Assembly: GCA_010909165.1 (NCBI GenBank)
Contig: VJWM01000260.1
Coordinates: 62,001 to 126,000 of the forward strand
Origin: Anthoceros angustus
Taxonomy: Eukaryota > Plantae > Anthocerotophyta
DNA length: 64,000 nucleotides
Direction: 5' to 3'
A program made the position numbers and the translations under genes. The notes under the pieces were generated by a model. That model did no database searches and had not been told where the DNA came from. It worked only from the letters and a program-made list of their open reading frames with translations. This document shows, piece after piece, positions 1 through 60,132 of the stretch (position 1 is its first letter; each line of letters starts with the position of its first letter).

Positions 1-3000
1 ATGGTATCTTGGGTTTGTTGAAGTCCGTAAAGAGGGCTCCCATATGAAGAGAAAATACCATAACGTTGAGACCAAAGCGAAGTTGATGGTCATAACTCTT
101 GCATCCTACAAGTAATGAACACTTGTGGGATTCTGACCTTCATTCTTCATCGAATTGTGTCTGCCTTCCCCCTCCAGCGCACGGCCACCAATCTTGCTTA
201 GTGTTGACTCCAGAATCCTTTCAACTACCACGGGTTTCATATTGCCCTAAGCGTGATGTAATATTTGTTGGCTCACGTTCTTCCCAATGTGCATGGTATC
301 AATAAATGCCTAATTCATGATAAGACAATATAATATGACAAAAACTATAATAGCGATAAATTAATAATGTATATACTAACAAAAAGAGTTTAAGCAAATA
401 GTTTTAAACAAAACAAAGGACATGTACCTACCTCCCAATACATAAGATGAGAATATTGTTATGATTTTGGTTGCCTGATGGAAATTGTAACTAATCAAGG
501 CGAATTCAAGAACAACATGATGAGAGGTTTCACAGAGGCATATTCCATCAAGCATAGAATGGCCACTGTAAACCCAATCTCAAAGGGCGGTAGAAAGTAC
601 AAACAAAGCGTTGTGGTATGAATGTAATGACAGCTCATGTAGTTAAGGGTGTAGATCACGGAGTCCCATAGGAAGTGGTTGGAACGTTTTGGTGGCATGA
701 CATGTGTCCATACACCCGCTGTATGGGTGGCGCACGATACACAGCCCGGAGCTTTGGAGCACGACAAACCATCAGAGCCTCAATTGCGTGATAGTATGTT
801 TAGACGATTCTATAGGCGGTTTTACGGTATCTGACGTGCCCAAGTGCTGCCACACCTCGCACGATTGGTGGCAGCAACTTCGGCAGGGGGGCCATTTTGG
901 TGTTTACCATCCACTTTTTGCTTAGCATAGGACATTGTCGTTATGCTGTGTTCAGGGAAGAGTGTGTGAGGGTGAGGTTTAGAGATGAACCCGATCGATT
1001 GCCATGCCGACCATGCGACCATGGCGCGCCATGTCGGCGGTCTTGATACATCTGATGTCACAGCAAGTACACCGGATGATTGTGGCGTATGCTCATATGC
1101 ATGGGCATAGGGGTGATGGGCATGCGACCACACCCGCCATGAGCAGGCATACAGTAAGTTTGAGGCCGGGTGATCACGCGGGATTATAGTTTCACTTGAG
1201 ATCACCGATGGCGTCATGCGCCCCAAGTTGCCCGTGGCGGTGTCTGGCGCCGGCGAAAGGGATAAAGGCGCAATCCGAGAAGAGACGGATTGCGATGTTC
1301 ATGATAGCAGACGTATGCCCAGGCGGTGAATGTAGGGCTTTGGGAGTGAGAAGGGATAGCGGTGAGGATGTTTGGAAGGCGATCGCGCGGATGTATGCTG
1401 TGAGTCTCGTCGAATGAGTTTTGCCATTTTGATGTTTACCATCCACTTTTTGCTTAGCATAGGACATTGTCGTTATGCTGTGTTCAGGGAAGAGTGTGTG
1501 AGGGTAAATTGAGGTTTAGAGATGAACCCGATCAGTGCCATGCCGACCATGCAGCCATGGCGCGACACATCCTCACGCTTGATTTGAACAAAGAAAGCTT
1601 CAGATGGTATCTTGGAGTTTGTTGAAGTCCGCTAAAGAGGGCTCCCATATGAAGAGAAAATACCATAACGTTGAGACCAAACTGAAGTTGATGGTCATAA
1701 CTCTTGCATCCTACAAGTAATGAACACTTGTAGGATTACAGCCTTTCTGTTCTTCATCAGAATTGTGGTCTCTGCCTTCCCCCCTCCTAGCGCACGGCCA
1801 CCAATCTTGCTTAGTATTTGACTCCACCGAATCCTTTCAACTACCACGGGTTTCATATTGCCCACAAACGTGATGTAATATTTGTTGGCTCACGTTCTTC
1901 CCAATGTGCATGGTATCCAATAAATGCCTAATTCATGATAAGACAATATAATATGACAAAAACTATAATAGCAGTAAATTAATAATGTATATACTAACAA
2001 AAAGAGTTTAAGCAAATAGTTTTAAACAAAACAAAGGACATGTACCTACCTCCCAATACATAAGATGAGAATATTGTTACTTGATTTTGGTTGCCTGATG
2101 GAAATTGTAACTAATCAAGGAGAATTCAAGAACAACATGATGAGAGGTTTCACAGGCATATTCCATCAAGCATAGAATGGCCACTTTGTCGACCCAATCT
2201 CAAAGGGCGGTAGAAAGTACAAACAAGGCGGTATGGTGTTGTACAAAGATGTGTGAGCATGAGCCCCAAAGGTGACATTCTCACCTACAGTGCCATGCGA
2301 CCATGCGACCATGGCGCCGGCAATTTGTCATGTGGTGGTCGATACATCGATGTCTGTAAGTACATGCGGATGATTGTGAGCGTATGCTCATATGCATGGG
2401 CATAGGGGTGATGGGCATGCATGGACCCACACCCGCCATGAGCAGGCATAAGTTTGAGGAGCCGGGCCGTGATCAGCGGGATTATAGTTCACTTGAGATC
2501 ACCGATGGCGTCATGCGCCTAAGCAAGTTGCCCGTGGCGGTGTACGCCGGCGAGGGATAAAGGGGCAATCCGAGAAGAGACGGATTCGATGTTTGTTGAG
2601 CAGAGATCGGATTCCCATGTAGGCGGTGAATGTAGGGCTTTGGGAGTGAGAAGGATAGCGGTGAGGATGTTTGGAAGGCGTCGCGGATGTATCTTGTGAG
2701 TCTCGAATGAGTTTTGCCATTTTGATGTTTACCATCCACTTTTTGCTTAGCATAGGACATTGTCGTTATGCTGTGTTCAGGGAAGAGTGTGTGAGGGTAA
2801 ATTGAGGTTTAGAGATGAACCCGATCAGTGCCATGCCGACCATGCAGCCATGGCGCGACACATCCTCACGCTTGATTTGAACAAAGAAAGCTTCAGATGG
2901 TATCTTGGAGTTTGTTGAAGTCCGCTAAAGAGGGCTCCCATATGAAGAGAAAATACCATAACGTTGAGACCAAACTGAAGTTGATGGTCATAACTCTTGC

Positions 3001-3560
3001 ATCCTACAAGTAATGAACACTTGTAGGATTACCTTCTTCCATCGATTGTGGTCTCTGCCTTCCCCCCTCCTAGCGCACGGCCACCAATCTTGCTTAGTAT
3101 TTTGACTCCACGAATCCTTTCAACTACCACGGGTTTCATATTGCCCACAAACGTGATGTAATATTTGTTGGCTCACGTTCTTCCCAATGTGCATGGTATC
3201 CAATAAATGCCTAATTCATGATAAGACAATATAATATGACAAAAACTATAATAGCAGTAAATTAATAATGTATATACTAACAAAAAGAGTTTAAGCAAAT
3301 AGTTTTAAACAAAACAAAGGACATGTACCTACCTCCCAATACATAAGATGAGAATATTGTTAACAGTTTTGGTTGCCCAGTGGAAATTGTAACTAATCAA
3401 GGCAGGGAATTCAAGAACAACATGATGAGAGGTTTCACAGAGGCATATTCCATCAAGCATAGAATGGCCACTTTGTACGACCCAATCTCAAAGGGCCAGG
3501 TAGAAAGTACAAACAAGGCAGCTGTCATGGTGTTGTACAAAGATGTGTGAGCATGAGCCC
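1..3560. repeat. Mosaic tandem duplication of TE-derived sequence (about 2.5 copies, period ~1.3-1.6 kb)
   Basis: The block atggtatcttgg(a)gtttgttgaagtccg recurs at ~1, ~1606 and ~2897. The block tttaccatccactttttgcttagcatagg recurs at ~903, ~1435 and ~2728. Copies differ mostly by small indels. Confidence 0.9.
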
Positions 3561-7650: not shown

Positions 7651-10600
7651 GGTGTTTAGCCCTGATTCGCGCAGTTTCATTGACACTTTTGATTGATTGA
7701 AGATTATTTGGCTTATTTAAATTTTAGCTTTACATTCGTCCAGGTCATTTTACCACAATCTATATAATTATCATATTTCGTTAGTGGACTTAAATAAAAT
7801 TATTATTCTTCTTTGTGGCGAAGCCATGACCGGCGGTGGCTCCGTGGCAACTAACGCCCGGTCTTTCGTAAAAGTCGCCCTAACAACGAAAGAGTGATAG
7901 AATGCATACCTTTTTTGTTGTTGTTGTCGAGGCTGTCGTGTTACAAGCTGCTGGTCTTCGAGCGGCGGAGGAGTAGGCTCGCGTACCTGCAGGTCGTTGG
8001 ACCCAGAGCGCGACGCCGGCAGATCGATTCTCATTTTCAACACAGTGGAGTTCCCTCACCCTGAAAGCGAGGGTTTGAGGTTGGCGCTGTTCCGTACCGA
8101 TCGATGGAATTCCGTCATCTCCAAATTGCTGTGCAGCAGCGAGCCTTTGAGGAAAACCGGGGGAACAGGATGGAACACACGGACCTTGTGGCGTGGGAAG
8201 TAATGTCGCACCAGGCTCTTCCTACGCGTTGCGCAGGCTGAGTTACATCCACGCGCGCTTTAAGCGCGAGAACGGGGATCACGTCTACACTCTACACCCT
8301 GTCCTTGTTTGTCACCACTCCCCTGCAATGCCTCACCGCTCCGCCGTGCCGTAGCCTCAGGCCTGGGCCATGTGAGGCGTCGGCTAGATTGTCCGTATGT
8401 TGTGTTGGTAGCGAGAGTCGCATCCCCTCCCATCGCACCGCACCGCACCGCAGCGCCGTGCAGTGTTGTTACCAGTGCCTTCAAACCCTTACAGCCATAG
8501 ACGTGGTGGAAAGGATGAGTGAGCGTGTACGCGGCCATGTGCAGAGAAGGATTCCGCAGGCCGACAGAAGCGGAGAAGATGCCGAGCTAGTCTACATGGT
8601 GTGGCATGACGTGGGAGTGCGCATGCGCATGGCCATAGGGTTTGTCCCCGGAGCAGCCCCGTCGGCTGCAGGCGCTGGCTGCAGGGATTGGTGGCGGGGA
8701 AGTGCGTGGGGTGGCTGCTGCCGCTGCCGCTGCCGCTGCCGCCGCGCCCGGTGCCCGCTGCGATGGGACATCGCCAACCGGATCGGGACAGACGCGGAGG
8801 CGGGGGAGGAGGAGGTGCGAAAGGCGAAGTGTTCCAGTTGGACGGCGCGGCGGTGGCGGTGTCCCTGTCTGTGCAGGGACGGGTCTACGGGCGCAGGCCT
8901 ACAGGGTGCGCGGGCGAGCTGGGCCCTCGGATCGTGGCGCTATCGGGGACGGGGAAGCGGCCCTCCGCTGCCGTGTCCCCTTTCCCTGGCTCGAGGTGAC
9001 AGATTCCGTGCTCCAACTGCCGTGCCTGCAGGTTCAACTGGTTTTGGCGACATTCCAAGTGCGGTTCAACACACAAGGCTCGACCAGCGGGCTGCGGGCG
9101 CCGGGACAGGCTTTGCACGCGCCACTGCGCGCTTTTGTGCTTCGGAGCCGAATCCTGTAAGGCATATATGCCTTTTTAGCGATTCGGGAATTTCAATGCC
9201 CGCAGCAGCTGCTTTCCGCTTCCCCGATGTGGCAACGGGGGCCGGGGCTTCCCGCGCCGGGACTCCGGGACCCCGGGACCCCGGGACCCCGGGAAAACGA
9301 AACATGCAAAAGAGGGAAGAGTGAGTTCAACCATCAACGGCATGCCGAGTGGGGCAACACGAAAATCATTGCCTGCGCTTACTTTACTGCCGTCATCAAA
9401 TCAAACGCTTCCTCTCACTCCGTGTTCTCCCGTTTCCCTTCTCCGTAGCACGCACTCTGCCATTGCCATTTGCCAGCACTTTACTCCCCTTTCTTCTTCC
9501 TTCCTTCTCTCATCGAGCACACTCTCCCGCACATTTACGCTAAGCAGCAGCACAGTGGCCACCACCAGCAGCCTGCTGCTCCTGCTCTGCTCTGCTCTCT
9601 GGTCCGCCTGCCGCTGCTGCCGCCGCCGTAACGGCTGGGCCACGCCAGGCCAGACCCCGCCTGCCCCCCTTCCAGCCCGGGCTGGGCTGGGCCCTGCGCC
9701 CCGCCCAACGGCTCCGCGGGATTATTACACTCCAGGCCCCAAGACTAAGCAGCGGGGTTAGCGCGCGCAGCCGCGAGCTTAGCCACAAACTCTGCTCGCA
9801 TCGCCACGCCACGCCACGCCGCGCCTCTCCTCGCCTCGCCTCTGCTCGGTTGGAACTGGGCCTGGGCCTGGCCTGGCTATGGCTCCTGCGGCTCATGGCT
9901 CCCGGCACCGCTTCCCTTTCCCGCCTCTGCGTCTGCGTCTGCGTCTGCGCCTGCCCCTTCCGCGCCCCCGGCAGCGTCAGGTATTGTCATTCAACCGGAA
10001 TTGTGCGTCCCGCCCCCTCCCGGCTGCTGCCTGTTTCTTTTCCCCATCCGCTTGCTGCCAATTTGGCGTGGCCTAATCCCGGGGCCGCCTGCTCCCCTGG
10101 CTCTGCGCCACTGCGGGCCGGCCAAGAAGTGGCTCTTGCTACCGCGCAATTCTCTGGCTCGTGCTTTCTCTGCTGCCGGAGCCGGAGCCTGCATCCCGCC
10201 GTCTTTTTCTTGCAATGCCGGCTGCTGTTGAAATTGGCAGCCGCTGTACTGCTCTCCCTGCCGCGGAAGCTGGGACCCGGCTCGGAGGCGGAGTCGCTCC
10301 GGAGACTCGCCCTCGCCCTCGCCCTTCTCCCGCTCGCCCCGCATTCGGTCGTCCGGGGTTTAGGGCTCTGCCAAGATTCTTCAGCTTTTCCGTTTTTTCG
10401 CAATTGCGCAGGTTGTGGCGAAGGCAGTGGTGGGACAGTGACGAGGAGCGCTGGTGTTGAAAACGGGGCACTTGGCACCGCTCTCTCCAAGGCCAGCCGC
10501 AAGGTAACTAACGCCTTCGCAAACAACATTCTTGTCATTCCACCTGTGCCGTGCCTGTGCACTGTAGCAATTTTCACCGCAGTCTCGGTTTTTTTGGCTT

Positions 10601-10876: not shown

Positions 10877-12397
10877 ATGGGGGATAGGATTCCTGGCTCT
10901 CTTCCAGGGGAAAACAGCCCTCGCTACAAGGGGCTTGCAGGATCATCTTCAAAGTTGAACCCCACTCTGCCAGGGAGCTTCGCTGCAGCAGCAGCAGACG
11001 GTCACGCTATTCTTGATTACTACCCCGGCTTGGTCAAAGTGAATCGCAACACCAATTTCGGGGAGGAGGAGGAGGAGGAGGCTGGTGATGACGAACATTC
11101 TGAAGCTGTGCCTGATGCTCACCAGGTGGCAATCGAGCTGGACAGGGCAGCTGCACTGCTGAGAAAGCCGGATACTGCTGACATCCCCATGCGTGATGGC
11201 ATGGGCGACGCAAGAATTAGAGTGGTGGGAGCTGGGGAAGGTGGTAGCCAGCCCGTCGAGGCTGCTCCAGCTGACGGGGATGATATTGACAGAGATGAGT
11301 TTGCTGTGACTGTGGCCGACCCAGGTCCTGGGAAGGCCGAGGAGAGGGTTTACCGCCAGGGAGTTTGGTCCTTGAATGAGAGCATCATATTGCTTGATGC
11401 CAAGAAGAGGGAGCGGGAAATCCTGTCCGGCTCCAAGAGGAATAGCATTTCTGCTGATGAGAAGTGGAAGGCGGTGGCAGAGTTTTGCTGGAGCCATGGA
11501 GTTCACCGCTCCAAGGAGCAGTGTCGCTTCAAGTGGGAGAACACCATGCCAGACTTCAAGAAGGTGAGGGACTACGAGTATGAGAAGGCAGAATCTGACA
11601 AGTCTTACTTTGAGATGGAGAACTGGCAAAGGAAAGAGAAGCATCTGCCACCTAACCTCAGCAAGGAGCTGTACACCATCATGGATTCCTTCCAAGCCGG
11701 GGGAACCACGAGGAGAGTGCTGGGTAGTGCCAAAAGGGAGGTGCGTGAAAGGATGGCGTCAAGGTTAGGAATATCTTCTCAGGTATCTGTGCCTGAAGGA
11801 GACAATCAAGAGGCTGGTGCGGGCGACGCCTTGGTAGAGGGGGAACGAGACAAGGCAGGGGAAGCAAAGCAGGCGGATGAGAAATCAAGAGATGCAGAGA
11901 CCAGGGGAGGGGGTAGGCGCAAGAGGAGAAGGGTAGTGGATAGCAAGGCAGAAGAATTAGCTAAGGTTGAGTCTCAGGCACTGCAGGCCCCACCAGCAGC
12001 AGAGGGGGTGAGGGAAGTAGAGGGCATGCCAGCTGCAGCTAGGGTGAGTGACGAGGTTGCAGGTGCCGTAGCTGCCGTGGAGCTGCTATTGAGAGTAGAC
12101 GGCAGCACACTTAACTATGGGCAATCGGAGGCAGCAAGGGAGCATGTCGACAGCAACATCAGGCTGCAGGGTGGTGGAGGCCTAGGGGAAGCAGGTGGTG
12201 ATGACAAGAATGCTGCCCTGCCTAGCAAACAGGCTCCGTCAGCAGAAGACAGGAAGGATGCTCGTCATCGGGAGTTGGTGGCCTTGGAGAGGGAGAAATT
12301 GGTGGCGAACAAGGAAGCCATGGGCTTGGTGGCCTCCGCTCTGAACAACGTTGCCACCGCCTTTGTAAGGATGGCTGAATTGCTTCAGCAACGATAG
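10877..12397 (+). CDS. Trihelix transcription factor, SH4/ASR3-like clade (Myb/SANT-like domain), intronless CDS, 506 aa
   Basis: WSLNESIILLDAKKRE...KWKAVAEFCWSHGVHRSKEQCRFKWENTMPDFKKVRDYE...SYFEMENWQRKEKHLPPNLSKELYTIMD matches the ASR3/SH4-type trihelix and its SYWxMxxxxRxExxLP extension. C-terminal amphipathic/coiled-coil segment (RHRELVALEREKLV...MAELLQQR). Confidence 0.9.
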   Translation: MGDRIPGSLPGENSPRYKGLAGSSSKLNPTLPGSFAAAAADGHAILDYYPGLVKVNRNTNFGEEEEEEAGDDEHSEAVPDAHQVAIELDRAAALLRKPDTADIPMRDGMGDARIRVVGAGEGGSQPVEAAPADGDDIDRDEFAVTVADPGPGKAEERVYRQGVWSLNESIILLDAKKREREILSGSKRNSISADEKWKAVAEFCWSHGVHRSKEQCRFKWENTMPDFKKVRDYEYEKAESDKSYFEMENWQRKEKHLPPNLSKELYTIMDSFQAGGTTRRVLGSAKREVRERMASRLGISSQVSVPEGDNQEAGAGDALVEGERDKAGEAKQADEKSRDAETRGGGRRKRRRVVDSKAEELAKVESQALQAPPAAEGVREVEGMPAAARVSDEVAGAVAAVELLLRVDGSTLNYGQSEAAREHVDSNIRLQGGGGLGEAGGDDKNAALPSKQAPSAEDRKDARHRELVALEREKLVANKEAMGLVASALNNVATAFVRMAELLQQR

Positions 12398-39630: not shown

Positions 39631-40995
39631 TCATACTGGAGTGGTATCCTGCGGGTAGCTGCCCAACACCCGCAAGAAAGTGGCAAACTCTTGCAACTGC
39701 CCGAGCGCGTTCTGCGAGCGGGGATCGGCCATGGAAGCCTCGAAATCAACGTAGAAGAGATAATCAAAGCACTTGGCGGTGCCGTTGTTGCTGTCATCCA
39801 CGACGCGCAGCGGGCGGTTCCTTTGCGGCCTGCTCTCGATCTTGGTGAGGTTGATCCCTCGGAGCGCGAAACAAGACAGCGCCTTGAACAATACCCCCGG
39901 GCCTTCCTCCAGCGTGAAGACGACGCTGGTCTTGAAGGGCCGATCGTTCCTGGGAATGATGGGCTCCCGCGCCAGCATCAAGAAGCGCGTGACATTCCCC
40001 GTGTCGTCCTGGATCCCGTCCGCGAGAATCTCCAGCCCGTAGATGGCCGCGGCCCGGGAGCTGGCCACGGCGCCCGTGTCCCGCATCTTGTGCTCCATCA
40101 CGAACTGCGCGGCCCCGGCGGTGTCGTCGAACGCCTCCCGCACCACCCCGAGCTTGGCCAGGCTGTGCTCGCACTGCGCCAGCGCCTGCGGGTGGCTCAC
40201 CACCCGCCGGAGCTCCTCCTTCTTCACCCCCGGCATCCCCAGCAGGCAGTGGTGCACGCCCAGCTGCACCTCCCCCACGATGTGCAGCCGGTGGCGCAGC
40301 AGCAGGTCGTAGTTCCGGTGGATGCTCCCCCCAATGGAGTTCTCGATGGGCAGCACGGCCCGGTCCACCAGCCAGAGCTCCACCGCCTGGAAGGCCGCCT
40401 CGAACTGCTCGCAGGGCACCGACTCGGAGCTGGGGTACGCCTTGGCGGCCGCGGCCTCACTGTACGCCCCCGGCACGCCCTGGTACGCCACCCGGATGCG
40501 GTCCCCGTGCAGGACCTTCTTCTCCACCAGAGTGAGCGGCTTGGGCAGGGTGACCAGGTCCCTGCTGCCCTCCACGCCGCTGCCGTTCGCCGCCCCGTTC
40601 CCGTTCCCGCCCCCGCTCCCGCTCCCGCTCCCACTCCCGCTCCCGCTGCTGGTGGCCACCACCTGGAGCGCTGCCTCCGGGCGGGCCTCGGTCTCCGCCA
40701 ACGTCGCCCACTGCCCGGTTAGCATCGCGCAGGAGCTCTCCCACTGCGCGCCCCTCCCCACCTGCAGCGCCGGGTCCGCCGCCATGGGCCACGACGCCTG
40801 CCCCACATTGTACCCCGACGCCCGCAAATTCCCGACCCCGCTGCCCTCCTGCCGCCGCGACCCCGCCTGCCTCTGCCCCGAAACGGCCACCTTCACCTTC
40901 CGCTTCAGCCCCGCGGACAGCGCGTCGCCGCTGCAGCTGGACTTGCATTCCGCCACCTTCGCCGCCGCCCCGGCACGCATCGCCAAGGCCGCCAT
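39631..40995 (-). CDS. ADT: Arogenate/prephenate dehydratase, plastid-targeted, intronless, 454 aa
   Basis: [62 protein letters not shown] and the ACT domain KTSVVF...LTKIESRP...[12 protein letters not shown]...LRVLGSYP. Transit-peptide-like N-terminus with WESSCAML. First ATG at 40995. Confidence 0.97.
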
Positions 40996-42420
40996 CGCAG
41001 CAGCTCGGGGCGAGCAGAGCACCCACCGAGAGAAAGATGAGGTCGAAGGACGTCGGAAAGCAAAGAAATGAAAGAAGCAAGGAAAAGGAAGAGAGGACGC
41101 GAGCGCAGCGCACAGGAAGGGCGTGAAGAAGACACGAAGAAGAGCAGGATGGGGAGGACAAGAGAGGGGTTACTCAGATCAGTGACGTCTCAGACGAGCA
41201 ACACGGCAGAGGCCAGGGGCAGGGACAGAGGCAGGGGCAGGCCAGGCCGCACGGAAAGATGGTGGCGACGCCTTAGTGTCGATCGACCGAGGGGGCCGGA
41301 TCGGGCACGCACGGCACGGCCAACACGGACCCCTGCTTTATGCGTTTCACCTGACAAAGAGACGCGGGCGCGCGGGCCCTAGCCGGTGGCCGCCGGTTGG
41401 CGCGTGGGGCGTGACCGGGAATCGGTCAAGGGGCTCCAATTATGGAGCACTGTTACAGCTACAGCGAGGCTCCGTGGCCCTCGCCTCACCGTGGACTGGG
41501 CTCGAGTTCCGCCGTTCCGCCCTTCCGCCCTTGCGCCTGCTCCTACCGGGGCTGTGCTGTGAAGCTATTATTATTATTATTTGTATGGAGCTGGTGGAAA
41601 CGGTTTTACTGTAGCGCCGTCCCCCGGAACAGGAGCGGCACGTGTCCGCGCCATTATTACACTCCCACGTGACCGACCGGGGATTCCCGGTGGACCGCCC
41701 GGGCCACAACCACAAATCGATGGCGCGAATCCCGAACGGGGAACGGGGCTGGGGGGCTGGGCAACCGTCCATGTGCTCTCTGTGCTCCCCTGCAACCTCC
41801 AATAATGCAATAATGCAGGGCTTGGGGGAGTGGTTCGCGGTAGGTACGACTCGCTCCACTGTCGTGCTCCCGTCGTCACTGCGGCTTTGGAAGGTTCCGC
41901 TCCGTTGGTTGTCGTGGCTGCAATGTGAAAGCGGGTTCCTGGTTCCTGGTTGCTGGTTGCTGGTTGCTGGAGGAAGACGATGAAGCAGGCTACGTTGTGA
42001 GCTTGTTACATTTGTGCAGATGATTGCACAACAATGCCTCGGATCCGCCTCCCTTTACATCGCTTGCTGTAACTGTTTTGTACCTATAATGTACATGGAT
42101 CAGTTGTTGTACAATGATTAGGGCACGATGTTGCCCACGCGCAAGATACCCGCCGGAAATGAGCTTGGCGTGTTTCCGCTCATCCTTGATTCTCCCAGGA
42201 GTCGTGACACCGACTGCCTTCGCCACCATCACGCTCCAAACCTTGCAACTTCCTCCAAGATAAGCACGCCTGGAAGGCAGGAGAACTGCATGCAAGAGGA
42301 GGAAAGAAAGGGGAAGGAAGGGGAAGGAAGGGAAAGGAAGGGAAAGGAAGGGCATCGCTATTGCAACGGAGTAGGCTGGGGCTCGGGAGGAAGTAGCGAG
42401 ATCCAGGTCCATCTGCAGGC

Positions 42421-46074: not shown

Positions 46075-49000
46075 TGCATGGTCATGGAGAGCACTTGAAA
46101 ACGAACAGCTTGAGAGCATTACAGGAATGTGTTGAATTGAAAGTGTGACAGAGTGCAAAAGGTCTGATCGTGAAACAGTGTGTTTGCTCAGCTGAATTCA
46201 GAGCAATTGACGTCTTGGACTTCCAACTCACAATGCCACCTGCAAGCATAAAGATAGAACCACTAGTGAATTTCCTTGTGTCAAGATCTCCCACCCAATC
46301 TACGTCGGTCCAGCCAATAAGCTTGGTTTGCGCATTAGGACCTCCTTTACACTGAATTCCACGGGTTCTTGTCCGTTGTAGATATCTAAGGATTCTGTTG
46401 GCAGCCACCCAATGCAACTTGCCGAGATTGGATAGGAACTGAGATACATGTCCATTAAGACATGCTACATCTATTTGAGTGTACCGAGCTAAATGTTGAA
46501 CACTACCAACTACTCCAGCATATGGAACTAATTACATCTCTGCAGTTTCAATATGTGATTGAGGTGATATTGTTTTGCTTAGCCAGAGCATGTTTGCATG
46601 GGTGTATTAGCTGGTTTGCAACAAGACATCTGATACTTGGTTGGCAAATTAGAGACATAGATGCCTTGAGGTAAAGTGATACTATGATGAGATGGATCTT
46701 GAACAACCTGAATGCCAAGGCAATATGTCATACTACTACTTTCTGTCATCTTGAATTCTTTCCTAAGGTCAGACTTGCACTCAACTAAATATGTCTCGTT
46801 GTTAGAAACCATAATGAGGTCATCAACATAAAGATTCATCATTAGAAGCTGCTTCCAACGGTTTCTAATGAAGACACTCGCATAGCTGACACCCACACTC
46901 TAATGAACTTTTGATATATAGCCTAGGCTGAGCAAATGTAGTTGAAAGCTTTCATACAAGCCTCTTGGAGACTATTTGAGTCCATAAAGTGTTTTCTTAA
47001 GTAGGCAGACCTTGGACTCTTGGCCTGGAGCTTCATATCCTGGAGGCTATTGTGCGTAGATTTCCTCCTTTAAGATTCCATGTAGAAAAGCCGTCTCCAC
47101 ATCTATTTGGTGTATAAAGAGACTGTACAGAGCAGCTAAGGCTATCATCACGCGAAGAGAGGTGAGCTTGACTACCGGGCTAAAAATGTTTGATTCTGAG
47201 AAGTCAACTTCTTTCTTCTGCATGAACCCCCAGGAATTGGATTCTAGTCCCGCAAGGGCTCCTTTAACGGGAACTATATCAACACTGAAAAGAGCATGAG
47301 CAGAAAGCCGTTGGGACTTCTCGAAAGTAAGGTCATGAAACTTTACACTGGGAATCCCTCTGGTCGATCTGGTGGATCGTCTTGTAGTCTCAGGAACAAG
47401 TTGATCATGCACGAAAACATGCGGATCTACCCCTATTCCCCCTTGTTACTGAGCAAGATCAAGGAAAAGAGGGTGGCCGACATCGGGAGCCATTTGTAGG
47501 ACAGGGTTAGCAGAAGGGGTGAAAGGAGTCCCCCTTGTCGCAAGGCTGTTGGAATTAGAGTCTGAATCAAAAGACGAGTGAGAGTCCGCTGGAGAGACCG
47601 GAGCAGTGTGGTGAGATGGCGCGGGTATCACCACAGCAGGTTGAGGAGCAGGGGTGATCGCGGGTTGCTGGAGGTGGTTGAAAAACATCTTCCTGAAATG
47701 TGGTGACTATAGGTGGGCGAGTCATGTCATTGACGGCGCGGCCGGCTGCAGAGAGAGTATCGGGAGAAGGACAACCAATCTCTATTTTCTAAAACACAAG
47801 CCTGAAGCGTTTCCCAGCTTCTAGGCTTTTCAAGCCTATGCTGAAAATCAAACTGGACAGAAGATCAAAATCTTCCGATAATGCAAGAGAACTTACCTCC
47901 CTTTTCTGAGGATCATCTCCTGTCTCACGAAATCCAACATCAAAAGATCGTTCTGTATTCTCATCAGCAACTAGGCAAGGCCGAAAGACGGCATCGGTCG
48001 ATCATGGATGGTCTGTGTAGCTCTCTTGCCACAATTGTTCTCCCCAATCATTTGTGGGCAGAGGCCGCTGCTGCTATCTGCTATGTTCAAAATAGATGCG
48101 GGACTTCCACTGTACCCGACAAGACACCGTATGAGATCTGGATGGGGAAGAAACCAACTGTCAACCACTTGCATATATTTGGGTGCACCGCTTACAAATA
48201 CGTTCCGCTGGAGATAAGAAAGAAGTTTGACCCCCGCTTTGTCAAACTCATCTTTGTGGGCTATGGAGAAGCTTCTGAAGTAAAGGGTTACCGCCTTTTC
48301 GATTGCCACAAAATTAGTTTCACCCTTGCTCGCAATGTGATTTTTTATGAAGCTTCTCTGTGGCTGAAGTCATCCAGCAAGACGTACATGTGCAACTTTC
48401 TTATCAAGGTAGCTGTCTGCATAGGGCCACAAAGATCAACGTGCACTAATTCAAGGATACTTGATGTGTGTGTATGAGATCTAGGGTAGGACTGGCTATC
48501 ATGTTTGCCAACTACACAGCCAGGGCACAAAGGTAAAGCCCGCAACTTGGGTGGTAATCTGAAGACTAGATTTTTGGTGCATATCCTCTGCATGGCCTAA
48601 AAGTGTAAGTGTGCTAAGCGCAAGTGCCACAACTTAGTGCTAGCATCTGTTTGGGAAGGTGCTAAACTATGTGTGGGATGTGCAGAAATTGAGGTTTCAG
48701 GCAGGATGCCGAAAGCGACGTAGAACAGTTTGCCACTTGGTGGATAAAAGAGCTTGACTAGTTGCCCTGAGGTGTTTCTAAATGGCTATGAAGCAACCTT
48801 TACGAGAAAAGATAATTTTGCTAGTTGGTGAATTAGTGGCCTATGTGACTGAAAACAAATTGTGTGTCAGTGCAAGGACATGCTGGACGTCTTTGATGAA
48901 GGCTGCTAGCATGGTTCTAGAGTTGCACGTTGACCATGCCATTACCAACTGCCATGTGTGGAGAGCCATCTCCCATGTAGACAGGCTGTGAAGCGAGTAA

Positions 49001-57555: not shown

Positions 57556-58387
57556 CACCAGGTGCTCTGTACAGCGAGTCGTTGTGGCTTGATTCTTTTT
57601 TTTTGGCGTTCAAGGTCGAGACATCGGGGATGCTTCCCGGCCTGAGGATCTGATTACCGGACGGGACTTTTCGTTGATCCATCAAATTGGTGATCTGCCG
57701 TCTGGGTCTTGTAGTCTGTAAATTGGTAGTTTCTTCGGGTGCCTCCTGACATATGTCCCATGGAGGCCTGTACAGTCACAGGTAAAGCTGATTAGGTATC
57801 TGGCTACCTGCTCCCTAGGCTTTTTAGCTTGAGATATCGGGGAAGCTTGCCTTGTACGCCTTACCAACAGCTTATTTGCAATTCGACGACAAATCATCGG
57901 TGGACCCCTCTGGTCCCCCTTCACTGTATTCGGTATAGGTATTCGCATTGTGTCTAAGTCTGGTCCACTTTCTGGCCGGTCTTTGGGTGCAATTTCGTCG
58001 CATTCTATGGACTGGGCCCGTGGCCTACTTGTTGCAAAAATCTGAAGGAGCTTTTCACGTCCATCAACATGTGCGTTTACCAAGTCATGTATGCTTTGCT
58101 TCGGTGTGAAAGCCCTGTCAAGATGCTAACAACAAACCCACGAATTCCACATGGTATATACGAAAGTAAGAAAATCTGGGGAAGAAAAGAAGCAAGATTG
58201 ACTAGGTAAAGGTGCAGCTGTATGTCGTGTTTCATTAGGTGGGTATATTAGGTAGTTCAAAATGAAGTTCACCAATACATGGGACTCGGAGTCATAAAAG
58301 TTTCAGTTTGTTTGAGGCAAAATCGCTGCTGCCCCACATCAATCACAGTGCCTAAATCCCTCACATATGGTAATTCTACGCTAATTC

Positions 58388-59308
58388 TCATGGCCTATGA
58401 GTGCGAGGTGTAACAAAAAACTGGTACTTGTTTGAAGCAGGGTCTATGACAACATGGAAAGCGTAAAACTGGGTGAACACTCCGATGATGAGGGCTATGA
58501 GGACAACGAGGATGGGCAGAACACAATATACCCTGGGGGTGAGTTTTGGTGACCTTCTTGTTGGTTTCTTGACAGCTCTCTGCCTCACGGCCTTTGGAAC
58601 TTGCCCCTTCTGAGTTTCTTCCAAGTTGTTGTCTTGTGCGCCTTCTGGTACCGGTGGTGGTGATTCTGGTGCTGCTACTACCTCTCCAGCTTCCATTGGG
58701 AAGTCCATCTCAATCTCCTTGTCGGGGACACTGGCAGTCGTTACCGAAGGGCTATCAGTTACTTGAGCTTCCATTTTAGCCCTCAATGCTGCTGCCTGTC
58801 TTGATCGAGTTGTGACGGAGGGGGAGTTCAGATTGGGACTTGAATATTTGGCTGGCGACGCCTCCTGCAGACAGAATTGAAATGCGCTGTTAGTTAATTT
58901 GCGCTTTCTAAGTTGCATGTTTCGTGGCCAAGAAGCCTTGAGCTTGTAAGTCTTGAGCAACCAGAGCGCAGCAGGGCAGAACCTTCTTCCTCCTCGGTTT
59001 TGCCTGCTTCGGTTCCGCTACAATTGAGTCGTCTCCTAATTGCGTACCGCCGATGTTGATGTTCGGTGTCTGCATTGCCAAATTTCTGTAGTACTGCTTT
59101 GTTTGCTTCTGCAAGTCGAAACCATCCAGTCATAAAACACAGAAACGTCGCCAGGAATCGCTGCAACAGGAACGGAAGAAATTAATCGTACACCGACCGA
59201 GCTTGGAAGTGATACTTTGTTCTTAGTGAGCCATGAAATAAGCTCTGGCACGGTCATGGCCATCAACTCCTCCAAAGGCGTATCAGCAACCACGGGTCCG
59301 CTATCCAT
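58388..59308 (-). CDS. LEM-like/HeH-domain single-pass membrane protein (LAP2beta/emerin-type architecture), 237 aa
   Basis: Exons 59308-59198, 59108-58983 and 58864-58388; both introns GT-AG, phase 0; start context acaATGg. Spliced N-terminus LEELMAMTVPELISWLTKNKVSLPSS|KQTKQYYRNLAMQ, basic clusters KPRRKK and KKPTRRSPK, hydrophobic helix VYCVLPILVVLIALIIGVFTQFYAF, short tail. Confidence 0.8.
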
Positions 59309-60132
59309 TGTTCCAGAATACAAATAAAGCTCCGCAGGCAGAAACGCAGAGCGATATGCAGTACTAGTTACAGAGTTCTCAACCGAGCAATATGCTAGGC
59401 CAAGGAATAAGGCTTAGCCTCCAGCCAATCACTCACTCTTTCACCTTTGGTCGACTCGGGACCTGTCTCACCACGGATATATCAGAAACCACTAACAAAG
59501 AAGGATCTCAATTCTGAAACAAGAGAGGCAGAATATCACAACGGTCACACTGTTACACACCCTGAGCAGCGCGCCTGTCTATCATAGTGAACAAGAATGT
59601 GCTACGAGGCGGACAAGAAGGGATTAAGAAGGGACTATCAAGGAAAAAAGAGCCGTTTCAATCAGACACCAACCTCGCATCTAAGTTTCCCCCAACTGGC
59701 AGCATTTACGTCCAAATCTGCTTCCTCCTACAGGTCTGAGAAAGGAGGTGACGGCAGAGGCTGTATTTCTTGTGCCCCGGCCAGACTACTGTTCATTGGC
59801 TCGTCTTGCTACAAGCACAGACGCGCGCATTCCCGCCTTTGGCAGTCGGATGGACCGGTTCCAAGATCGGTAGTGTGGACAGTGGCGTGTGGAGCTCTGG
59901 GAGCGAGTACTTCGGGGTTGCGAAGGAAAGAGAGTTTGAATCGCCCGGAAAACGGTCCACGGTCCTCCTAACATGACAACGTAGACCAGACCGGTGGAAG
60001 TTACCTAACCGCAGTCCATCCTTGGGATTGCTAACTACTTACAAAGCTCCGACCCACTAACAACGTTGCAATACATTGACGATGAATTAGTGCTTCATGT
60101 ACAAGACTTCTTGCATCCCTGCTGGTTGAGCC

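Follow-up and report, generated by a model that had tools for sequence, protein, structure and literature searches.

We analysed a 64,000-nucleotide stretch of the Anthoceros angustus genome (contig VJWM01000260.1, positions 62,001 to 126,000), henceforth the window, in whose coordinates all positions are given. At positions 58388-59308 on the minus strand lies a short gene of three exons, which the initial annotation had proposed as a candidate inner nuclear membrane protein. Judged by its relatives and its predicted product, it is a plant gene of expressed type that probably encodes a tail-anchored (type II) membrane protein, and its N-terminal domain very probably belongs, at profile level, to the LEM-like or helix-extension-helix (HeH) class. 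Joining exons 59308-59198, 59108-58983 and 58864-58388 gives 714 nucleotides, which encode 237 residues and a stop codon. Both introns (89 and 118 nucleotides) are GT-AG and of phase 0, and the exon 1 start is the first ATG in the open reading frame (ORF) at 59036-59323. The ORF list of the gene region holds fragments only and never the whole protein. The reconstructed exons bear out the earlier statement that the first intron splits the N-terminal domain. The features are given below; L001 is a homologous contig and P0001 the protein encoded on it.

59198-59308, minus strand: exon 1, with the start codon at 59308-59306; residues 1-37, which hold helix 1 of the domain and its extended segment and end ...VSLPSS.
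59109-59197, minus strand: intron 1, 89 nucleotides, which cuts the LEM-like/HeH domain between S37 and K38; not in L001.
58983-59108, minus strand: exon 2, residues 38-79, comprising helix 2 of the domain (KQTKQYYRNLAMQ), linker and the KPRRKK cluster (59000-58983).
58865-58982, minus strand: intron 2, 118 nucleotides, GT-AG, phase 0; not in L001.
58388-58864, minus strand: exon 3, residues 80-237, and the stop codon at 58390-58388.
59064-59278, minus strand: putative LEM-like/HeH domain, residues ~11-52 (coding 59278-59198 and 59108-59064, the span including intron 1).
59000-58983, minus strand: basic cluster KPRRKK, residues 74-79; RPRKKK in P0001.
58778-58825, minus strand: conserved basic motif SPSVTTRSRQAAALRA, residues 93-108, common to all three family members, with a low-confidence predicted helix.
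58664-58726, minus strand: conserved acidic motif PDKEIEMDFPMEAGEVVAAPE, residues 126-146, in which the window protein and P0001 agree at 20 of 21 positions.
58544-58570, minus strand: juxtamembrane basic cluster KKPTRRSPK, residues 178-186.
58457-58531, minus strand: single predicted transmembrane helix VYCVLPILVVLIALIIGVFTQFYAF, residues 191-215, from hydropathy and an AlphaFold2 helix at the homologous position of P0001.
58391-58456, minus strand: C-terminal tail, predicted luminal, residues 216-237 (22 residues), net charge +2.

Because both splice donors are weak (TCG/GTCGGT for intron 1 and AAG/GTTCTG for intron 2, the slash marking the junction), the gene model needed outside support. 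We used the window N-terminus (58-79 residues), exon 3 and the family alignment as queries, and P0001 as a full-length proxy for the spliced protein. The exon 3 search returned P0001 (238 residues) as its single relative, 50% identical across 97% of the exon; over the N-terminal domain the two proteins are 78-83% identical. The P0001 ORF is uninterrupted on L001, a 1165-nucleotide Logan contig of run SRR33208242. Aligned to the window, L001 has just two long internal gaps, and these match the proposed introns exactly. An in-frame stop lies three codons before the first methionine of P0001, so its N-terminus is complete. Given this upstream stop and the ~380 nucleotides that follow the stop codon, L001 looks like an assembled transcript.

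A second relative (P0003) also supports the first intron. It is KAJ7521985.1, 'hypothetical protein O6H91_19G077600', a 225-residue protein of the lycophyte Diphasiastrum complanatum, which was found in a phmmer search with P0001 (E 1.6e-4). We reconstructed its gene on the 49-Mb chromosome record and obtained three exons separated by two introns, both of phase 0. The first intron site (...VALPTQ/RKPKAFY) falls at the same aligned residue and in the same phase as in the window gene (...VSLPSS/KQTKQYY). The second lies in the linker, which aligns poorly. The three-exon, 237-residue model of the initial annotation thus holds, on the strength of a transcript that lacks both introns and a lycophyte gene that shares the site of the first.

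We compared the substitution pattern of the window gene and P0001. Synonymous sites are saturated, with a proportion of synonymous differences (pS) of 0.79. The corresponding nonsynonymous proportion (pN) varies along the protein: the N-terminal domain, at 0.09, is conserved best, two short motifs and the membrane span plus tail have 0.21-0.30, and the linkers have 0.37-0.55. Since pS is saturated while the pN of the domain is 0.09, the gene is not a product of chance. One could still propose that no real gene exists and that the model is a chance splice of ORF fragments, as the weak donors might suggest. The uninterrupted homologous transcript, the conserved lycophyte intron position and the strong purifying selection argue against this, and we regard it, together with the KASH-type reading treated below, as exceedingly improbable. 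On this evidence, the gene is real, old and under selection that is strongest on the N-terminal domain.

The initial annotation also suggested that a weak phase-2 donor (SN-AA/GTACCA) could join an acceptor at ~58114 and extend the tail into the ORF at 57682-58083. We rejected this splice as the main isoform: the P0001 transcript reads through the donor to a stop codon at the homologous position, and the residues of the tail are conserved. The ORF at 57682-58083 has no family match. It lies between the gene described here and a convergent gene with a J-domain (PF00226; 56834-57350, plus strand), which is split over two ORFs, indicating an intron; the 3' ends of the two genes face each other across ~57.4-58.4 kb.

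The family comprises three proteins in the data searched: the window protein, P0001 and the lycophyte protein. A phmmer search of P0001 against 1.84 billion representatives added only the lycophyte protein and one further sequence (P0002), which we discarded as a compositional rather than homologous match. P0002 is an 820-residue low-complexity protein of seven near-identical ~85-residue repeats, and it matches the basic linker (RRRKKK...KSKS...TRKSR; E 2.6e-5). Word-seeded searches with exon 3, P0001 and the family alignment found no members beyond these three, nor did two metagenome-contig scans, and no paralogue was found elsewhere within the 64-kb window. No angiosperm relative was detected among the 1.84 billion representatives or in the family-alignment search; this absence is weak evidence because cross-lineage identity is ~24% and the gene is easily missed in annotation. 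Comparison of the window with the Diphasiastrum locus detected no synteny, the only similarity being fragments of copia-type retroelements. In the window such degenerate Ty1/copia-type polyprotein fragments, with internal stops, occur at 46214-47184 (minus strand), and others lie at 2809-3023 and 20189-20425 of L002, in the flanks of the Diphasiastrum homologue. Literature searches brought up neither a paper on a tail-anchored HeH protein of plants nor any published plant protein of such a kind, which bears on the concern that the family might already be known from angiosperms.

We then assessed the identity of the N-terminal domain. The initial annotation had aligned 40 residues without gaps to the human LAP2 (thymopoietin) LEM-like domain. 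We located this string at residues 11-50 and reproduced the gapless alignment, in which 15 of 40 residues are identical; the LAP2 string used there agrees with the sequence of PDB entries 1H9E and 1GJJ in the HMMER output. Against Pfam, the window N-terminus matched HeH (PF12949) with E 0.014 and 15.5 bits (gathering cut-off 28.9) and Thymopoietin (PF08198) with E 0.021 and 14.9 bits (gathering cut-off 28.6). P0001 and the lycophyte protein matched HeH and/or Thymopoietin with E 0.006-0.08 at the equivalent residues (13.1 bits for HeH and 14.9 for Thymopoietin in P0001; 16.7 for HeH in the lycophyte protein). For all three members, SAP (PF02037), LEM (PF03020) and Rho_N (PF07498) went unreported at E<=10. 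The Pfam comparison that the initial annotation had called for therefore gives HeH and Thymopoietin, recurrently if weakly and below threshold, and never LEM or SAP; the worry that the domain would score better as a generic SAP domain is not borne out even at E<=10.

We also compared the sequences and their profile with proteins of known structure. Among 177,635 PDB sequences, the top two matches of the three-sequence plant profile are the LAP2 LEM-like entries 1H9E and 1GJJ (E 0.01). The top match is also 1H9E for P0001 alone (E 0.062) and for the window sequence alone (E 0.25); the lycophyte domain alone found no match among the PDB sequences. We next built a reference alignment of three short domains. 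The human LAP2 sequence was taken from the PDB output, while those of Naegleria D2V886 and yeast Heh2 came from the supplement of Koreny and Field, read by optical character recognition (OCR). The plant profile aligned to this reference in hhalign with 95.9% probability, P 5e-9 and a score of 41.3 over 34 gapless columns. In 300 column shuffles of the plant alignment, the score had a mean of 7.9, a standard deviation of 1.7 and a maximum of 14.7, and the reversed alignment scored 8.9. The real score thus lies ~19 standard deviations above the shuffled controls. The probability remained at 95.0% when LAP2 was left out and only Naegleria and Heh2 were used, and at 94.6% when the lycophyte sequence alone served as the query. 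The signal was lowest against Heh2 alone, whose string carries a one-residue OCR deletion. An invariant lysine of the plant domain (K45 of P0001) aligns with the lysine of the RK pair of LAP2.

The predicted structure is compatible with this assignment. For the domain, AlphaFold2 gives a short helix, a helix at residues 24-33, an extended segment and a helix at residues 45-54, i.e., a helix-extension-helix, with a predicted local distance difference test score (pLDDT) of ~84 in the core. Foldseek returned no significant match in the PDB (best E 1.9), and Rho N-terminal, emerin LEM and SAP domains make up most of the neighbours. LEM, SAP and Rho N-terminal domains share a common helix-extension-helix superfold. 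The modelled fold is thus consistent with the LEM-like/HeH class but does not discriminate within the LEM/SAP superfold. In the structural check proposed initially, a helix-extension-helix was thus predicted, and no significant Foldseek match to LAP2 or Heh domains appeared.

Could the N-terminal likeness be convergent or generic, such that any short helix-extension-helix with an L..L...V.LP...K pattern would score alike without homology to LEM-like/HeH domains? This would fit a short domain (34 aligned columns), single-sequence E-values that all lie between 0.006 and 0.25, the lack of a PDB match for the lycophyte protein alone and the failure of Foldseek to tell the LEM, SAP and Rho_N folds apart. 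However, the profile-profile score stands far above the shuffled controls and is robust to leave-out on either side, and the gapless alignment places the invariant plant lysine on that of the LAP2 RK pair. The extreme N-terminal position and the membrane anchor match LAP2 and Heh independently of the sequence score. We therefore consider convergence improbable, and homology of the domain to the LEM-like/HeH class, at profile level, very likely. Its homologues at that level would be the LEM-like/HeH domains of LAP2, of amoeboid and excavate MSC proteins and of yeast Heh2. The LEM-like/HeH identity that was first proposed thus finds support in the profile match and the modelled fold, while staying below Pfam gathering scores. 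Since it is the LEM-like type, which binds DNA, that the domain matches and not the BAF-binding LEM type, the question of whether BAF co-occurs does not apply.

Between the domain and the membrane span lies a linker of ~140 residues that is largely disordered and rich in basic and acidic residues; it contains two basic clusters and a pair of short conserved motifs. In the AlphaFold2 model of full-length P0001, only the domain and a helix at 190-219 are confident (pLDDT 79-91); elsewhere the model is disordered or of low confidence, save for a weak helix over the TTRS motif. Both conserved motifs sit in an otherwise fast-evolving linker. The basic one follows the pattern SPS-x-TTRS[RK]QAAALRA in all three members, and the acidic one the pattern PDKEIEMDFP-x-EAGEVVAAPE; in the Diphasiastrum protein, an acidic stretch with a nearby DF pair is seen by eye. 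The TTRS motif may resemble arginine-anchor nucleosome-binding peptides.

Toward the C-terminus, the hydrophobic span is 25 residues long with a mean Kyte-Doolittle hydropathy (KD) of 3.05 over its best 19 residues. The 15 residues that precede it carry a net charge of +6. The window protein has no N-terminal signal sequence, no Pfam family covers the full-length proteins, and neither the window protein nor its relatives match MSC. All of the elements listed in the initial annotation (KPRRKK, KKPTRRSPK, one hydrophobic helix and a short tail) are present, the helix being 25 rather than ~24 residues. The type II layout likened there to LAP2beta and emerin also agrees with our analysis, given a C-terminal span at 191-215 of 237 residues, the charge of +6 before it against +2 after it, and the AlphaFold2 helix. 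The protein accordingly has a tail-anchored type II layout, and in its predicted topology most of the chain would face the cytosol or nucleoplasm.

Outer nuclear membrane proteins of KASH type likewise have a C-terminal span with a short luminal tail behind it. Plant KASH proteins (WIP/SINE type) end in ...VPT/PT. The tails of the three members end in ...THRP, ...IRQP and ...IFQR, and on this C-terminal motif we ruled out the KASH reading.

From established knowledge of LAP2beta, emerin and Heh1/Heh2, we propose a mechanism for the protein. The C-terminal anchor would be inserted post-translationally into the membrane of the endoplasmic reticulum (ER). The extraluminal, nucleoplasmic part (~21 kDa) would be small enough to pass via the pore membrane to the inner nuclear membrane, and the basic clusters may serve as nuclear localisation signals that aid this passage. 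Retention at the inner membrane would come from direct DNA binding by the LEM-like/HeH domain, as for the LEM-like domain of LAP2. Such a BAF-free chromatin tether would amount to a minimal LAP2beta or emerin, or to the HeH end of Heh1, Heh2 or Lem2. We favour, with somewhat more confidence than doubt, a LAP2beta/emerin-like protein with a LEM-like domain that tethers chromatin to the inner nuclear membrane without BAF.

Several points weigh against this tether. No single member reaches the Pfam gathering score (~29 bits), the family has few members, and 1H9E is not among the 50 Foldseek matches listed. Both profiles are thin, being built from three sequences apiece with an effective number of sequences (Neff) of 1.6, and the Heh2 comparison string came from an OCR-read supplement and lost one residue. 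The lycophyte protein does not keep the basic clusters at the same positions. Moreover, we infer the location, DNA binding and topology of the protein, and a tail-anchored protein can equally remain in the ER or outer nuclear membrane or enter another organelle.

This last point leads to the most serious alternative, in which the same protein with the same fold resides in the ER, in the outer membrane of the nucleus or in that of an organelle, and the HeH module is cytosolic and binds RNA or a protein partner. Tail anchoring alone leaves the inner nuclear membrane unspecified, the net charge of the tail is positive (+2), and HeH-type folds occur in RNA-binding contexts, e.g., the Rho N-terminal domain that dominates the Foldseek list. 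On the other hand, the sequence signal is specific to LEM-like/HeH nuclear-envelope families and not to Rho_N or SAP. The basic clusters, although conserved in part only, include one that is kept between the window protein and P0001 as KPRRKK/RPRKKK. Long, very hydrophobic tail anchors are typical of ER insertion and not of mitochondria or plastids, and the span found here is long and very hydrophobic. We thus regard residence elsewhere as unlikely, though it deserves more weight than convergence of the domain, and retain the BAF-free tether at the inner nuclear membrane as our preferred interpretation.

We compared this interpretation with the literature on LEM-related proteins. LEM-like and MSC domains trace to the last eukaryotic common ancestor and LEM occurs only in Holozoa (Koreny and Field, PMC5630835); the same paper ascribes direct DNA binding to LEM-like and MSC domains and BAF binding to LEM (PMC5630835). 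Plant MSC proteins (Physcomitrella, Amborella and Arabidopsis) are without the N-terminal LEM-like domain, which is present in those of Acanthamoeba and Naegleria (PMC5630835 supplement), and the combination of HeH and MSC outside opisthokonts is reported from Naegleria only (PMC6240307). According to a 2023 review, plant MAN1 lost its N-terminal LEM domain (PMC9980628), and a 2025 review states that plants possess neither functional homologues of LEM-domain proteins nor BAF, and names PNET2 as a candidate analogue (PMC13280194). The statement in the initial annotation that angiosperms generally lack LEM/HeH proteins therefore agrees with both reviews as regards LEM-domain proteins, but it needs qualification in that plants keep a MAN1/Lem2 homologue with MSC and without the N-terminal LEM/HeH domain (PMC9980628, PMC7285967, PMC5630835 supplement).

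It is tempting, if decidedly tentative, to suppose that the ancestral LEM-like/HeH module survives in plants off the MSC-bearing MAN1, on a minimal tail-anchored protein, at least in lycophytes and the lineage of the window. The gene is relevant to the question of whether the green lineage retained this module from the last eukaryotic common ancestor. For seedless plants it is a testable candidate for a chromatin tether, which flowering plants may have lost, as the initial annotation suggested. How plant chromatin attaches to the nuclear envelope is poorly understood, and unrelated proteins of PNET2 type have been proposed as stand-ins (PMC9980628, PMC13280194). A LEM-like/HeH domain joined to a tail anchor in a plant gene is a small and concrete candidate for a direct tether. 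If the proposal is correct, this would be the first direct BAF-independent tether of DNA to the inner membrane known in land plants, and the LAP2/emerin-type layout would either predate animals or have arisen twice. The gene also illustrates how annotation and domain databases can miss a short gene when an intron interrupts its sole recognisable domain; in the lycophyte, the copy carries the label 'hypothetical protein' and no Pfam domain.

Elsewhere in the window, we identified an intron-less 463-residue ORF at 39631-41022 (minus strand) for a prephenate/arogenate dehydratase (PF00800, E 7e-59) with an ACT domain. Its N-terminal extension, ~170 residues long, contains a (SG)n/(GN)n run, and the ORF lies where the GC content of the window is highest (67%); its product from Met10 had no exact match in the protein collection. 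A 506-residue ORF at 10877-12397 (plus strand) has a Myb/SANT-like (trihelix-type) DNA-binding domain (PF13837, E 5e-9). Both ORFs, like the copia fragments, are in keeping with a plant genome. GC-rich islands occur at 8001-10000 (63%) and 40001-42000 (67%), compared with a window mean of 50%, and AT-richer blocks lie at 36-38 kb and 50-56 kb (39-41% GC). No tRNA genes and no Rfam families at gathering score were found in the 64-kb window (1-64000).

Finally, we compared the protein to known systems. LAP2beta/thymopoietin (TMPO; 1H9E, 1GJJ; PF08198) has, as predicted for the window protein, a helix-extension-helix of ~40 residues at its extreme N-terminus, which is the domain aligned without gaps at 15 of 40 identical residues, followed by a long disordered nucleoplasmic region, a single C-terminal span and a short luminal tail. 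Unlike LAP2beta (~450 residues), the 237-residue window protein is without the second, BAF-binding LEM domain and without the lamin-binding region; it also falls below the Pfam gathering threshold, and plants are reported to be without BAF (PMC13280194). Emerin and LEMD1-type proteins share the small type II layout predicted here, with an N-terminal module of the HeH superfold, a disordered linker and a C-terminal anchor. Emerin, however, carries a true BAF-binding LEM domain (PF03020), for which the window protein has no match at E<=10.

An N-terminal HeH/LEM-like domain (PF12949) is also found in Heh1/Src1, Heh2, Lem2, Man1, Naegleria D2V886 and Acanthamoeba XP_004337553. The basic clusters in the linker of the window protein resemble the nuclear localisation signal and linker of Heh1/Heh2. 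In contrast to the single span and lack of MSC in the window protein, Heh1, Heh2, Lem2, Man1 and the protist MSC proteins have two spans and a C-terminal MSC winged-helix domain. Plant MAN1 (Arabidopsis F4KH17/NP_199468; Physcomitrella A9RFH2) is likewise a LEM-related envelope protein and a candidate DNA binder at the inner membrane (PMC9980628), but it has two spans and MSC and has lost the N-terminal LEM/HeH domain. The window gene is a different gene and the converse of plant MAN1, with HeH and without MSC.

PNET2/NEMP, NEAPs and SUN1/2 are similar in that they are proposed or shown links of the inner nuclear membrane to chromatin or the nucleoskeleton (PMC13280194); their topologies and domains are different, and no Pfam family of theirs was matched. 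SAP (PF02037) and Rho N-terminal (PF07498) domains share the predicted superfold and are non-significant Foldseek neighbours, whereas none of the three members matches them in sequence. With no LEM match, a single span and no MSC, the protein belongs to neither the LEM family proper nor the Lem2/MAN1/Heh family. On present sequence comparisons, the LEM-like/HeH class accommodates it best, as a variant with a new architecture.

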